DNA of 64,000 bases from Vitrella brassicaformis CCMP3155 (lineage: Eukaryota > Protista > Chromerida). The notes beneath the pieces are model-generated. The model was not told where the DNA came from, did not search any database, and saw only the letters and a program-made list of their open reading frames with translations. The DNA lies in assembly GCA_001179505.1 (NCBI GenBank), contig CDMY01000241.1, positions 87,894 to 151,893 on the forward strand, in the 5' to 3' direction. Below are positions 41,165 through 50,748 of this stretch, in pieces. The translations under genes were made by a program, and so were the position numbers. The stretch's first letter is position 1. The number at the start of each line of letters is the position of its first letter.

Positions 41165-41851
41165 GCAAGGAGGAAGGCGAGCCGCATGTGTACATGGATG
41201 TGTTTGGGTGTCTGTCTGTCTGTCATGGCCTCAGGTAGCTGCTGCTGTTGGCGCACACAAGAGTGCACCTGTCTATTCATCGATGTGTGTGGGTGGGTGT
41301 GGGTACGTACGAGAAAGACTCAGCTAGGGGTAGAGTGCGTGTGTAGATTTGTCCAATGGATGTGTGTGAATGTGTGTGGTGCGTGCGGACAGCGCGAAAT
41401 TCAACCCTTCAGACGTGGCGGTTGTCATCTCACGGTGTCCACACAGTGCTCTGCCGCGCCATTCACTCAAACGCGACCCACAGACATGCAAAAACGGTCC
41501 TAAAAGGGTCAGAGGCTCTCCCTCCCTCCCTCTATCTGTCTGTCATTTCGTCTGTCTGTCTGTCTGTCTTTGGCATCTCCGCTGATCATGTCAGGCGTTC
41601 CGACGCACACACACACACACACACAGAAACAAACAAGCGGCGACTCGGTCGCGTAGATGGTTGACCGTACGATGCTTCATACACGCATTCATGCGGCCAG
41701 CCATGCAGTGGTCTCGTTCAATTCAGTACTGTACACAGGCCACCACAGCGTGATGCTCTTCTGCGGTCGGTATTCCGTCCCGCACACACACCGGCATCAG
41801 CCGACGACAAGCAGACACTCATCATCACGTCCATCGATCTGTCTACCAGCA

Positions 41852-44758
41852 TCACTTGTAAGGCACGATCACATCTGCTATGTCGGATGAGCAGACGGGG
41901 CACTTCCACGACAGCCGCTGCTGGTTGGGGGGACCCAAGTACTTCTTGAGCTCGTTGGCACAGCCTGATCCATCCAGCCGTATCAGACACAGGTGGAGAG
42001 AGACAGAGGGGGAGGGAGAGAGACATCATGATGGTGTGGTGCGCGCCGCTCTCTCGTGTGTAGGGGGTGACGTGTTCTCACCCACCCTGGCAGACGCACT
42101 GATGTCTGCAGGGGATGAAAACAACCTCCTTGGCCTGATCCACACCCACACACATACACAGAGCGATTGCGTCCACCTCTCTGTGGTTGGCACGGTGATG
42201 TGAGTCGTTGAGTCACCTTGTCCTGCACACACACACATACGCACACATACACGGCCAGCAATAGACGAGTGTTGTGGCTGGCCGACGGACTGACCATGCA
42301 GATGATGCATTTGTCGTCTCCCTCGAGCTTGCTGATGATCGTATCCGTCACCATGGCCACCTCGCCCTCCTTGTCACGCTTCAGCTGCTTCAACTCATCC
42401 ACAGGCAACCCTGCGCACATCACACACACCACACATACAGAGGTGGGTGCACTCTCCATGTGTGAGTGGGTGGGCCGGTGGCTGACCTTCGATGGTCTTT
42501 CTGTCAAGCGGCCTGGAGGGATCCTTCTTGGCCTTCTCGAGCTCCTCCTTCAGCTCCTGTATCTGCTTCTCTAGCCGTCCGCGCTCGTCAGATGCCGCCT
42601 CGCGATCCAGCTCCTGGTTGGCGCTCCTGGTCTCAGACCTGGTGGACAGACGACGGAGAGAACCACACACACACACGCACAATGGATGTGATGTTGTGTG
42701 GGCTCCGTGATGAGTGTGTGTGGTTGGGTGTATACTCACTCGACGAGTGAGTTGACGAGCTGTCTGACGGCCTCGATGAAGCCGTTGAACTCTGCCGTCT
42801 TGGCGCGGCTGCCGGCCTCTGAACACACACACACACACAGGCAGGGATGGGTGTGGCCATTTGGCTGTGACGTGCTTGCTGATGGTTTGCGCACACACGT
42901 TGTTTGATGACGGTAATGAGTTTGTCGAAGTCGTCTGACGTGCCGAAGAACGACGTTGGCGGAGATTGTGAACGGCCCATCTCATAGTCCTGCAGGCAGA
43001 CAGGCAGGCAGACAGGCAGGAAGCGGGCACATGAGATGCTGAAAGAAGACCATTGTGAAAGTGTAAGTGCATTTGTGAGGAGCATGCCTCGAATCTGATC
43101 TCCTCAGGCGACTGCAGACACCGCACACCGCACCAACACATACATGCATGACGCTAACAGCCTCTCACTGTGTGCCCTGGTGTGAGTGCTCCCTCCCTCC
43201 CTCCCTCCCTCATCTCACCTTGACGGCGTATTCCTTCTGTGCGATGATGTGCCTGTGGAACTGGCTCATGGTGGGCGCGGGCGGCTCATGGGGGAAGCGG
43301 AACTGCTCCTCGTACTGCTGGAAAGGAAAGGGGCTGCCCTTCACCACCTCACCATCAAACATCCCACCTTCAGACATAAACATACAACCAACCATCGGAA
43401 CAAAGCAGAGATGGTCCGTTTCGTCCGTGTGTGTGCCTGACTTACCAACATGGACACATTCCGATGCACTTCGCCGGTCGACGCGGCCGAGCAGCGCCGC
43501 CTGCGCCTTGTCGACGGCGCGCTTGCGGATCGCAGCTGCATGCACGAGACGGCATTCATGGACGAAGGCTAAGTGGGAGGATGGTGCTCTAGTTGTCTCA
43601 CCCTGGTCGACTTCGCGTCGGCCGTTGCTGGTGGATGTGGTGAAGACGCTGCTACTCCCGGTGGAAGGACCTGACCGCCACACACACGAGAAGGTGAGAC
43701 GCAGTACTGAGGCTTCTTGTCTGCCTGATTTCATGGGCTACCCATAGAGACAGGCTCCATCGGCCGGTCGGCGTTGGTCAGCACTCGAACCCGCAGATAC
43801 CCTCCTAGCCCCCCACCCATCCCGCCGGCCTCCATCATACCGACGCCACCGCCACTACTGCCGCTATTACCAAAAATCGGCACAGGCGCCCCTTCACCAA
43901 ACAAACCTCCACTCACGCGCAGCGAGCCAAACAGCCCCCCTCCCTGCGAGCCACCCGCTGGAGCAGCGGCCGCTGCAGGGGCGGCACCAAAAATGGATTG
44001 AGATGACGACGCACTGCTGGCCTGTCCGAAATTGGGTGTCGGCGGGCCAGCGGGGAAGGCAGAGGAGTCCGCCGCGCCGCCCGTGGTGCTGCCAGTGGAG
44101 AAGAGACCGCTCCCTCTGCTCGCGAAGATGGGGGTGGTAATGGGGCTTGTGCTGCCGAAGAGACCACCACCACTGGCGTTGGTGTTGGCGAAGATGCTGC
44201 CGGTGCTGCCCGCCTGTGAGCTGGCGACCAGACCACCTGTGCTGCCGAACAGACCCCCACCACCAGAGCTACTGCCGCCAAAGAGACCCCCGCCACTGCT
44301 GGTGCTGCCGAAGAGGCCTCCTGCGTTCGGGCCACTGCTGGCGCTGCTGCTGGTCGTCGCACCGAACAGTCCGGGGAAGGCCGTGGGATTGGTCTGTGCG
44401 GGGACGGGTGGGAAGGGCGGCGCACTCGGCTGAGGGAAGACGGCCGCGGCAGTTTGGCCGAAGACCGGGAGAGCAGACTGAGCCGTGCTGCTAGTTCCCG
44501 ATGCACCGGTCTGGAACAGGCCTGAAACGGATACATCCGACGACGTAACCAGAGATCACCGGACGGAGTGTGGGTGCCTGGTGGGATGGACCAGTGCTCA
44601 CCTCCGAATATTGACGCCGTTGATCCACCAGCCGCCGCAGCAGCGGGTGGAGGGGTTCCAGCGCCGAAGAGTGACTGTGCCGCAGGTGCGCCAAACAGGG
44701 AGCCACTCGTGCCGGCGCCCGAGCTGACACCTGCACCCTCGCTGCGCCGTCCTGACAT
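41852..44758 (-). CDS. GLFG-repeat plus GLEBS (Nup98/Nup116-like) protein with a coiled coil and a C-terminal RING-HC finger
   Basis: ATG at 44758, many GLFG/SLFG/IFG repeats, spliced HRHIIAQKEYAVK-SPEEIRFE-DYEMGR, coiled coil ERGRLEKQIQELKEELEKAKK, and RING CIICM-DK-AKEVVFIPCRHQCVCQ-GCANEL...KCPVC. TGA at 41852-41854. Confidence 0.85.
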
Positions 44759-44883
44759 GACCCTCACGCACTGCAATGACACAGCAGAACACGACGGAAA
44801 CTCAGACAAGTGTGCTGGCTGAGACGGCAGGGCGGAAAAGGAGTTACGTTTCTCTGCTCTGCTGGCTGACGCCTGTCAGTCAC

Positions 44884-45166
44884 TCAGGTTGTGTGAGATG
44901 TCGTCCACTGCGACAGCAGCCAGAGGACAATCAGGAAGCCGAAGATGAAGATGATGGCGGCGAGAGGCGACACCGGGAGACCATGCTCCGCGTACGAGCC
45001 GCCTTCGCTGAACACCTGACCAGCCAGCCATACCAGACACAGAGGCGAATGTTGCAGCAAATCAATGCCTCAATGCAAGCTCTTGCCTCACTTGGAAGCC
45101 AATGCGGCGTTTGACGTTCGGCCTGATGCCGCGAGGATCCTCGTCTTCTCTGTTGTCGTCCGCCAT
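44884..45166 (-). CDS. 68-aa tail-anchored membrane protein, Sec61beta-like
   Basis: Exons 45092-45166 and 44884-45015 with a GT-AG phase-0 intron give MADDNREDEDPRGIRPNVKRRIGFQVFSEGGSYAEHGLPVSPLAAIIFIFGFLIVLWLLSQWTTSHTT. The G-L-x-V-x-P, F, L and W positions match the spacing of the Sec61beta transmembrane motif. Confidence 0.65.
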
Positions 45167-45184
45167 TAGAATTTGCCCCGTGCC

Positions 45185-45240
45185 GCCTAGGGTGCTGCCT
45201 GAAACCGCTGCTGCTTCTAGGGTTTGGGGTTTCAGGGTTT
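45185..45240. promoter_or_regulatory. Telobox-like cluster plus a 30-nt element repeated exactly at 50408-50437
   Basis: GCCTAGGGTGCTGCCTGAAACCGCTGCTGC is followed by CTAGGGTTTGGGGTTTCAGGGTTT, about 20-75 nt upstream of the ATG at 45166. Confidence 0.5.
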
Positions 45241-45458
45241 CACGATCGTGCTGCCAGGCAGCCCTCCGCCAGCGGGCGTGCCACCAGCATGACGGCATAG
45301 CCACTAGTTGTAGTCTTTCCTTCCGCGGCAGATCATTTCACAACCGTGCTTCATCGAACCGTAAGTACCGTTCCCATCCGCTCGCACATGCAGCGAAGGG
45401 CGAACAGCTGATCACATCCACCGCAGCATTCATCGCAACCGATGTTTGTCTGGTGCAG

Positions 45459-46713
45459 GTGAGATCTCGTTTCAGGGCCCGACAGATACAATGTCGGCGG
45501 GGGCGGATGCAGGGCCGCTTGCACAGCTCCAGAGCATCGGCACCATCATTCTCAATGGCAATCCTGCTCAGACCAAAGAAGACGTTGACCGACTGAGGGT
45601 AAGTACAACTACCTCACACACGGCCGATGACCTCACACACAGGTGCTTTCCTCTTCTTGCCTTCAGGGTGTGCTGTGGTCTCGTGGCTGCCGCCGGTCAA
45701 TGACACATCTGACCCTGCTGCTGGACTTCCGCGACATAGACTCGAGTGTCCTTCCCGTGGTGCAGTCCCTGGAGCAGCTGCACGAGGCGTGCTGCCGGCC
45801 AGACGCCCCCTTCATCTTCGAGGAGGACTCGCCCAGCGCGGCCAACGCCAACAGCATGCACCTGAGCTTGTCGCTCTTCTACGGCGATGACTTCCCCCGC
45901 AACCCCTCGGCCCTCTTCAAGCAGACCATCCAGCAGCTGGCACGGCAGGCCAACGAGATCTACTTCGCCATGGCGCAACACGAGATCAACAACACCGTGG
46001 ACAATCCCAGCAAAGCGGCCATCGACGTGGCCTCCAGCCTGTCCTTCGAGCGCGCCGAGAGGGTGACGGTGTGCGTCTTCACCTACCCCCCTCCCCCTCC
46101 CACCACACCCTGCCCCCACCCCGCCATCATCGACCACCTCAGGCCATTCCCAAAGGCCACCCAATTAGACATCACCGGCAGGCTGGCTGCGACTGCGGGC
46201 CGTCTGCTGGCCGCCCGGATGGCGACCCAAGTGGCGAAAGTGACCATCAGCGGATTCCCCACCGGTGAGGCGCTGGGCATCGTGGGCGAGCTGGGTAGCG
46301 AGAGGGTCGTGGAGGAGGTATCGATCCACAGGGGGAGTCCGCGGCAGGTGTCCTTCCCCTTGGCCGCCGACTTGCCGACGATTAGCCAGCTGTGTTTCAG
46401 TGCACATGGTGGGTGAAAAAAGGCAATCAAGACAGGCTCCTTCTTTGGTCTCGTTCGTCCATCGCTGTCGTGTGTGTGTGTGTGTGTGTGTGCAGTGCTG
46501 TCAGGTGATGTCCAGGCCGAGTTCCCGTCCGCACTCTCGGGTCTGTTCCAGCACGTCCCGGGTCTGCAGCGTGTGGCCCTGTCATTCGACAACCACTCCC
46601 CAGCGGCCATCCATTCCGCCTTCCCCGACGGCTCGACGATCGGACATTTCCCCGTGACAGTGGAGGAGCGGTCTGGGTGCCCTGTCGTGATGGTCTCCCG
46701 TGACGCGTCGTAG
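45459..46713 (+). pseudogene. 5'-truncated family 1-related gene or remnant (C-terminal half only)
   Basis: Exons carry LQSIGTI...VDRLR and SRGCRRSMTHL, homologous to the family 1 middle region. The N-terminal half is absent and no in-frame ATG was found in the upstream exon. Confidence 0.5.
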
Positions 46714-50204: not shown

Positions 50205-50748
50205 GCTAGGGTAGGGAAAAGGACTGCAAACAAGAAAGCCAGAGGCACAGAGTACATTCTATCCAGCCACATCCTTCTCATCCATCCATCCTTCTCATCT
50301 CGATGCCCACCAAATTATCCGTGAGTACAGCACGTCTCAATTGAGGATTCTCATCACAGAGCTTGTTTGGCTTCTCACAAGCTCGCAGGGCGCCCCACAA
50401 ACAGGACGCCTAGGGTGCTGCCTGAAACCGCTGCTGCCCCGAAACAGAAACAGGAGAGGACGGTCCATTCATAATTCATTCATCCATCCATCAGGTGTGC
50501 GGCTACATTAGCGGCTAGAGATGTGTTCAGCCCCCCCTTGGTTCGTTGCCACCCATGAAAACACGACTCCACGAGCACGGTGTGTGTGTGTGTGTCTGTG
50601 CTGCCAGATCTTATGGTTGTCTGAGGTGTCGGCATGGAGGCTGCGATCACCTGAGCAGTGAGTGCGCAAGCTGAAAACACAAACACACAGGTGAATGCCC
50701 ATCTCGTCTTTCCCTCTATTTGTGCAGGTGGTTGGTAGTGTCCTGGCG

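Follow-up and report, generated by a model that had tools for sequence, protein, structure and literature searches.

In green algae, bicistronic nuclear loci have been described (Gallaher et al. 2021, PMC7896298; Duenas et al. 2024/2025, PMC11291117) in which a small first open reading frame (ORF1), often an unannotated 'pioneer' protein, lies shortly upstream of a larger and unrelated second one (ORF2) on one spliced, polyadenylated transcript. At these loci the median length of ORF1 is 291-357 nt and that of the spacer 40-183 nt (Duenas et al. 2024/2025, PMC11291117), few AUGs precede ORF2, and the relation between the two frames is random. Here we describe a locus of Vitrella brassicaformis CCMP3155 that resembles them in layout, with the single spliced transcript seen at contig level. 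With an ORF1 of 207 nt and a spacer of 48 nt, it has the same combination of small ORF1 and short spacer. It differs from the green-algal loci in belonging to a chromerid alveolate, in carrying an intron in its spacer, in an ORF2-only isoform that seems to coexist ('incompletely polycistronic' in the terms of the green-algal papers) and in being known from short-read contigs. A literature search found no report of nuclear polycistronic mRNAs or of spliced-leader trans-splicing in chromerids.

Compacted genomes, namely those of microsporidia and nucleomorphs, offer a second comparison, and overlapping transcription in them was reportedly described by Williams and colleagues in PNAS in 2005. Their overlapping transcripts are by-products of compaction and are mostly unspliced. 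The Vitrella locus is like them in its very short intergenic distances and, probably, in mRNAs that start inside or run into a neighboring gene, but it differs in that a dedicated intron joins the ORF1 exon to the start of ORF2. We think it on balance probable that the locus produces a dicistronic long isoform and a shorter ORF2 isoform, the former being a two-protein mRNA of the green-algal kind and not the message for a fused protein.

The window analyzed is a stretch of 64,000 nucleotides (contig CDMY01000241.1, positions 87,894 to 151,893) with about 59% G+C and numerous short GT-AG introns. Four RNA runs (X1, X2, X6 and X7) were mapped as assembled contigs on window positions 41400-46000; X1 and X2 come from one study (P1) and X7 from another (P2), and all three consist of spliced RNA. 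The features of the locus, in the order in which they are transcribed, are as follows.

45182-45214, minus strand: dispersed 33-nt motif in the 5' leader, 16 nt upstream of the ORF1 ATG; contig rec2 of X1 stops at the motif edge
45092-45166, minus strand: ORF1 exon 1, coding, 25 codons; ATG at 45166-45164 in the context attctaATGG; exon junction in X1 and X2
45016-45091, minus strand: ORF1 intron, 76 nt, GTGAGG...CAG, phase 0; joint 45012 to 45089 (cut +3) in X1 and X2
44990-45000, minus strand: apparent 5' end of the ORF2 contig in X7, depth 272; candidate second transcription start inside ORF1 exon 2
44884-45015, minus strand: ORF1 exon 2, coding plus stop, 43 codons with the membrane helix; TGA at 44886-44884
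44982-44984, minus strand: internal ATG, the sole other one before ORF2, out of frame, context cggagcATGG
44848-44883, minus strand: first 36 nt of the spliced inter-ORF spacer, starting with an unused GTGACT
44771-44847, minus strand: inter-ORF intron removed in the RNA, 77 nt, GTAACT...TTGCAG; joint 44770 to 44848 in X1, X2 and X7
44759-44770, minus strand: last 12 nt of the spacer, TGCGTGAGGGTC
41852-44758, minus strand: ORF2, 624 aa, 13 coding exons, with FG repeats, a coiled coil and a C-terminal RING

Direct reading and translation give an ORF1 of 68 codons (207 nt) in two coding exons, the second of which also serves as the 5' exon for the intron in front of the ORF2 start. This intron is removed in three runs from two studies: one contig each in X1, X2 and X7 carries the joint 44770 to 44848, which skips 77 nt (CT..AC on the plus strand, GT..AG on the minus strand) from the donor AAC/GTAACT. 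The bin depths in these three runs are fully explained by the spliced contigs, and thus no unspliced contig covers 44847-44771 in X1, X2 or X7; nor does any contig in any run end in or read into this interval. The first-pass annotation, made from the letters of the DNA, had proposed a different intron at this place. The ORF1 stop TGA (44886-44884), the GTGACT right after it (44883-44878) and the ORF2 ATG (44758-44756) on which it drew are all present by direct reading, and the acceptor ...tgtgtcattgcag ending at 44771 is both present and used in the RNA. Excising 44883-44771 (113 nt) on paper does yield TGA, 12 nt and ATG in frame. However, this 113-nt intron is found in no contig (rare variants may be lost), and the actual intron of 77 nt joins the same acceptor to a donor 36 nt further 3'. 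Spliced-leader trans-splicing at the 44771 acceptor was also considered and rejected: no loose ends are reported there, and cis-splicing is seen in three runs.

In X1, a single contig (rec2, 1110 nt) runs from 45182 to 43840 across the ORF1 intron, the inter-ORF intron and the first ORF2 intron, and thus holds both start codons; X1 is the only run in which one contig covers both AUGs. In X2 the same junctions lie on separate contigs of comparable depth (ORF1 junction, 8.0; inter-ORF junction, 7.2; ORF2 exon 4, 6.5-7.3). All spliced joints together give a 15-exon transcript, whose length from 45000 to 41641 (2251 nt) equals the span on contig rec14 of X7. That contig (2467 nt, depth 272) covers all of ORF2 and stops at 45000, 15 nt short of the exon 2 acceptor, and the X7 depth in bin 44942-45095 comes wholly from it (59 nt x 272.5 / 154 = 104.4, the tabulated value). 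It follows that 45001-45095 is bare of contigs in X7, as is exon 1 outside the repeated motif, and that the ORF1 exon junction is missing from this run; in X6 the plus-strand neighbor is expressed and ORF1 and ORF2 are not. With exon 1 lacking cover in both X6 and X7, it is seen only in the runs of study P1. The end of the X7 contig at 45000, together with the bare exon 1, makes an ORF2-only isoform probable, in which case ORF2 would be independent of the long form. We infer a second 5' end near 45000 from this contig boundary, bearing in mind that contigs cannot show starts and that holes in coverage prove nothing.

In the arrangement that we favor, a long spliced transcript starting at 45182 or further upstream would carry ORF1, the 48-nt spacer left after removal of the 77-nt intron, and the 624-codon ORF2. 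A shorter isoform, with its start within ORF1 exon 2 near 45000, would probably carry only ORF2. Each protein would be made on its own, ORF1 from the long form and ORF2 from the short form plus, on the long form, from those ribosomes that scan past the ORF1 AUG with its pyrimidine at -3; such scanning may be helped by the presence of only one other AUG in 252 nt. The inter-ORF intron, the shared exon and the continuity of the contig are direct observations. We infer further that the contig stands for one RNA molecule, that ribosomes translate ORF1 and that some of them reach ORF2 by leaky scanning.

The same contigs could also come from two separate, overlapping mRNAs, an explanation that is possible but which we hold to be doubtful. 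The ORF1 mRNA would then receive its poly(A) tail no more than ~110 nt past the stop, either ahead of the 77-nt intron or within it, ORF2 would be transcribed from near 45000, and the X1 contig would be a merge through the shared 150 nt. Assembly of short reads can fuse overlapping transcripts into one contig, and a contig that spans two genes is no proof of a single transcript; the halt of the X7 contig at 45000, with exon 1 bare despite a depth of 272, also suits two separate RNAs. Furthermore, the median distance between genes in V. brassicaformis is 92 bp (PMC4501334), which makes an ORF1-only mRNA ending no more than ~110 nt after the stop more plausible, and which likewise weakens the argument of the first-pass annotation that the locus leaves little room for a separate promoter. 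On the other hand, this explanation must assume a 3' UTR of at most ~110 nt with intronic polyadenylation, when no contig in any run ends within the inter-ORF intron or enters it, and when the X2 depths at the ORF1 and inter-ORF junctions are nearly equal. The RNA contigs contain no 3' end of ORF1's own. Assemblers do clip short dead ends, which could hide an mRNA for ORF1 alone if its 3' end is very short. Should the RNAs prove to be separate, the locus would be no more than a case of transcription units that overlap in a highly compact genome. Should long reads confirm the dicistronic form, nuclear dicistronic expression, known from green algae, would be extended to the alveolate relatives of malaria parasites, and an unannotated membrane microprotein would join the Vitrella gene set. 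Annotation by the longest ORF would then be shown to miss cistrons such as ORF1.

A second alternative, which we consider unlikely, holds that ORF1 is no functional protein gene. It would instead belong to an alternative 5' leader of the FG-RING mRNA, as a long upstream ORF that at most dampens translation of ORF2. The composition of ORF1 speaks against this, since its G+C at the three codon positions (0.57/0.43/0.78) matches that of coding exons, the non-FG part of ORF2 having 0.60/0.39/0.79; by comparison, non-coding G+C is 0.56 in the introns and 0.55 in the 3' UTR of this locus. The binomial probability of at least 53 of 68 third positions being G or C is 7e-5 to 4e-3, and ORF1 thus looks coding (GC3 of 0.78 versus 0.55 in non-coding sequence). 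At 68 codons it is also long for an upstream ORF (2.5% of shuffled leaders contain a closed ATG ORF of this length or longer), its phase 0 intron leaves the frame unbroken, and its product has a clean tail-anchor layout. The N terminus is both acidic and basic and contains no signal, residues ~40-60 form a strongly hydrophobic helix (Kyte-Doolittle mean 2.6), and the tail that follows has 8-9 residues, which places the one helix within ~30 residues of the C terminus. We use 'tail-anchored' for this layout and not for a family of homologs.

What lends the upstream-ORF explanation its weight is the isolation of ORF1, which is present in a single copy in the genome and whose exon 1 goes uncovered in X6 and X7. 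Searches of Pfam (E <= 10) and NCBIfam gave no match to ORF1, and neither a word search nor the JGI metagenomes yielded a relative. An exhaustive phmmer search with exon 2 against 1.84 billion representative proteins returned one match, to a repeat protein with HGLPLSP six times, which we rejected as spurious; the search gave no self-hit, and ORF1 is therefore unannotated. ORF1 is best described as an orphan, predicted microprotein of tail-anchor type, like Sec61-beta in layout only.

ORF1 is like Sec61-beta (PF03911) in its size, in having a basic N-terminal part on the cytosolic side, in a 'GL-x-V-x-P' turn that precedes the C-terminal helix, and in the shortness of the luminal tail. Identity with Sec61-beta had been suggested by eye and by a language-model Atlas, in which Sec61-beta clusters lie nearest to ORF1 (score 0.76, a lead only), but ORF1 is without HMM or BLAST similarity to that family, and Pfam, a genome scan and BLASTP together refute the assignment. 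The sole match in a genome scan with PF03911 (G000:C434) is a genuine Sec61-beta on another scaffold, and BLASTP of ORF1 against this copy gave nothing. This canonical Sec61-beta gene (L001 1285-1602; G000:C434:31009-31203) has an intron inside its Sec61_beta domain, after ...APGLKV; the intron stays open in frame, so that a six-frame scan reads one 105-aa ORF.

How ORF2 would be translated from the long form can be judged from its start codons. The ORF1 AUG has C at -3 and G at +4, and the ORF2 AUG lies in the context agggtcATGT, with G at -3. Vitrella's own start consensus, for which the histone and HSP70 loci gave too few clean starts, may differ. Between the starts of ORF1 and ORF2 we observed one ATG versus 2.9 expected (P = 0.22, a single locus and not significant). 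This ATG, at 44984, has a strong context, and ribosomes that had passed over the first AUG would be caught there; it opens a 17-codon ORF that, in the spliced RNA, ends ~95 nt 5' of the ORF2 ATG. Ribosomes should reinitiate inefficiently after translating an ORF of 68 codons, given a spacer of 48 nt. The first-pass annotation had proposed one mRNA with a functional upstream ORF and reinitiation: at contig level the first part stands through the shared exon and the X1 contig across both AUGs, which falls short of proving a single molecule, and reinitiation is unlikely for an ORF and a spacer of these lengths. On the long form, leaky scanning is more likely than reinitiation as the route to ORF2, and leaky scanning or the shorter isoform fit better overall; the short form would need neither leaky scanning nor reinitiation. 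Leaky scanning has been demonstrated for green-algal bicistronic mRNAs (PMC11291117).

The membrane-anchored FG nucleoporin POM121 provides a further comparison: there too a membrane helix is encoded upstream of FG repeats, whereas in Vitrella a stop codon stands between the two parts, and a search for readthrough signals turned up none. One could imagine a functional pairing, a 'split POM121', in which a tail-anchored microprotein residing in the ER or nuclear envelope is expressed together with a Nup98-like FG-RING ubiquitin ligase and docks this enzyme, and in which Vitrella, perhaps chromerids generally, use true dicistronic nuclear mRNAs systematically; this would be a speculative extension to which we attach little credence.

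The spliced spacer (36 + 12 = 48 nt) reads GTG ACT GAC AGG CGT CAG CCA GCA GAG CAG AGA AAC TGC GTG AGG GTC, then ATG, and is in frame from TGA to ATG without a further stop. Chance alone gives such an in-frame, stop-free spacer about one time in five (p ~0.21), and hence the frame relation is no evidence in itself; the two frames also agree in about one third of green-algal bicistronic pairs, the share that chance predicts (PMC7896298). The TGA at 44886-44884 is kept in all spliced contigs, and with it the membrane helix and the FG repeats would not lie in one polypeptide. That this TGA is read through or decoded as selenocysteine to give a membrane-anchored FG-RING fusion of POM121-like layout, as the first-pass annotation had entertained, is very improbable indeed, for although ORF1 and ORF2 share a frame that the one TGA interrupts, the UGA-G context is not of the leaky UGA-C or CUAG type, neither a SECIS element nor any other Rfam family was found at E <= 10 over 41200-45400 on both strands, and folding of the 60-120 nt that follow the stop is no more stable than that of shuffled sequence (z -1.0 to +0.4).

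ORF2 itself combines FG/GLFG repeats, a coiled-coil part and a C-terminal C3HC4-type RING (CIICMDKAKEVVFIPCRHQCVCQGCANEL...CPVC). Homology searches with it were run exon by exon, the joined ORF2 being used only for checks of frame and length. Its sole Pfam match is Nucleoporin_FG, below the cut-off, and a search for the annotated ORF2 protein or its orthologs with the FG exon as query gave no match in the length range searched. Within the RING motif lies a 6-nt microexon (42217-42222, minus strand, GACAAG), backed by three runs, which accounts for the three 'letters between' in the joint 42136 to 42294. A second, putative microexon of 24 nt (43088-43111, minus strand, encoding SPEEIRFE), followed by a GC-AG intron with its GC donor, is suggested by length and frame only, the stretch being repeat-masked in the RNA mapping. 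The resulting ...KEYAVK-SPEEIRFE-DYEMGR presumably resembles the GLEBS motif of Nup98; a PDB search with ORF2 exon 7 gave no match to this GLEBS-like region. Many of the ORF2 introns (41500-43220) are rich in simple repeats of the CA/TG and GGGA/CTGC types, and three such stretches, where many unrelated loose ends fall, were masked in read mapping.

The 33-nt motif of the leader, GCCGCCTAGGGTGCTGCCTGAAACCGCTGCTGC, occurs in the window at 45182-45214 and 50405-50437 and elsewhere in the genome at loci L005-L015. It has at least 40 copies genome-wide, of 97-100% identity and on both strands, with mostly unrelated flanks; some copies have in common a longer left flank, cttggccgtcaggccg. The motif is transcribed in many RNA contigs, at a very high summed depth (~3240 in X6 and ~4063 in X7); it may act as a promoter or leader element, or else mark the terminus of a mobile element. 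Between it and the first exon of a divergent plus-strand gene are telomere-like repeats, TAGGGTTTGGGGTTTCAGGGTTT, at 45218-45240. The contig of this divergent gene starts at 45243, and the head-to-head transcripts are ~30-60 nt apart at their closest.
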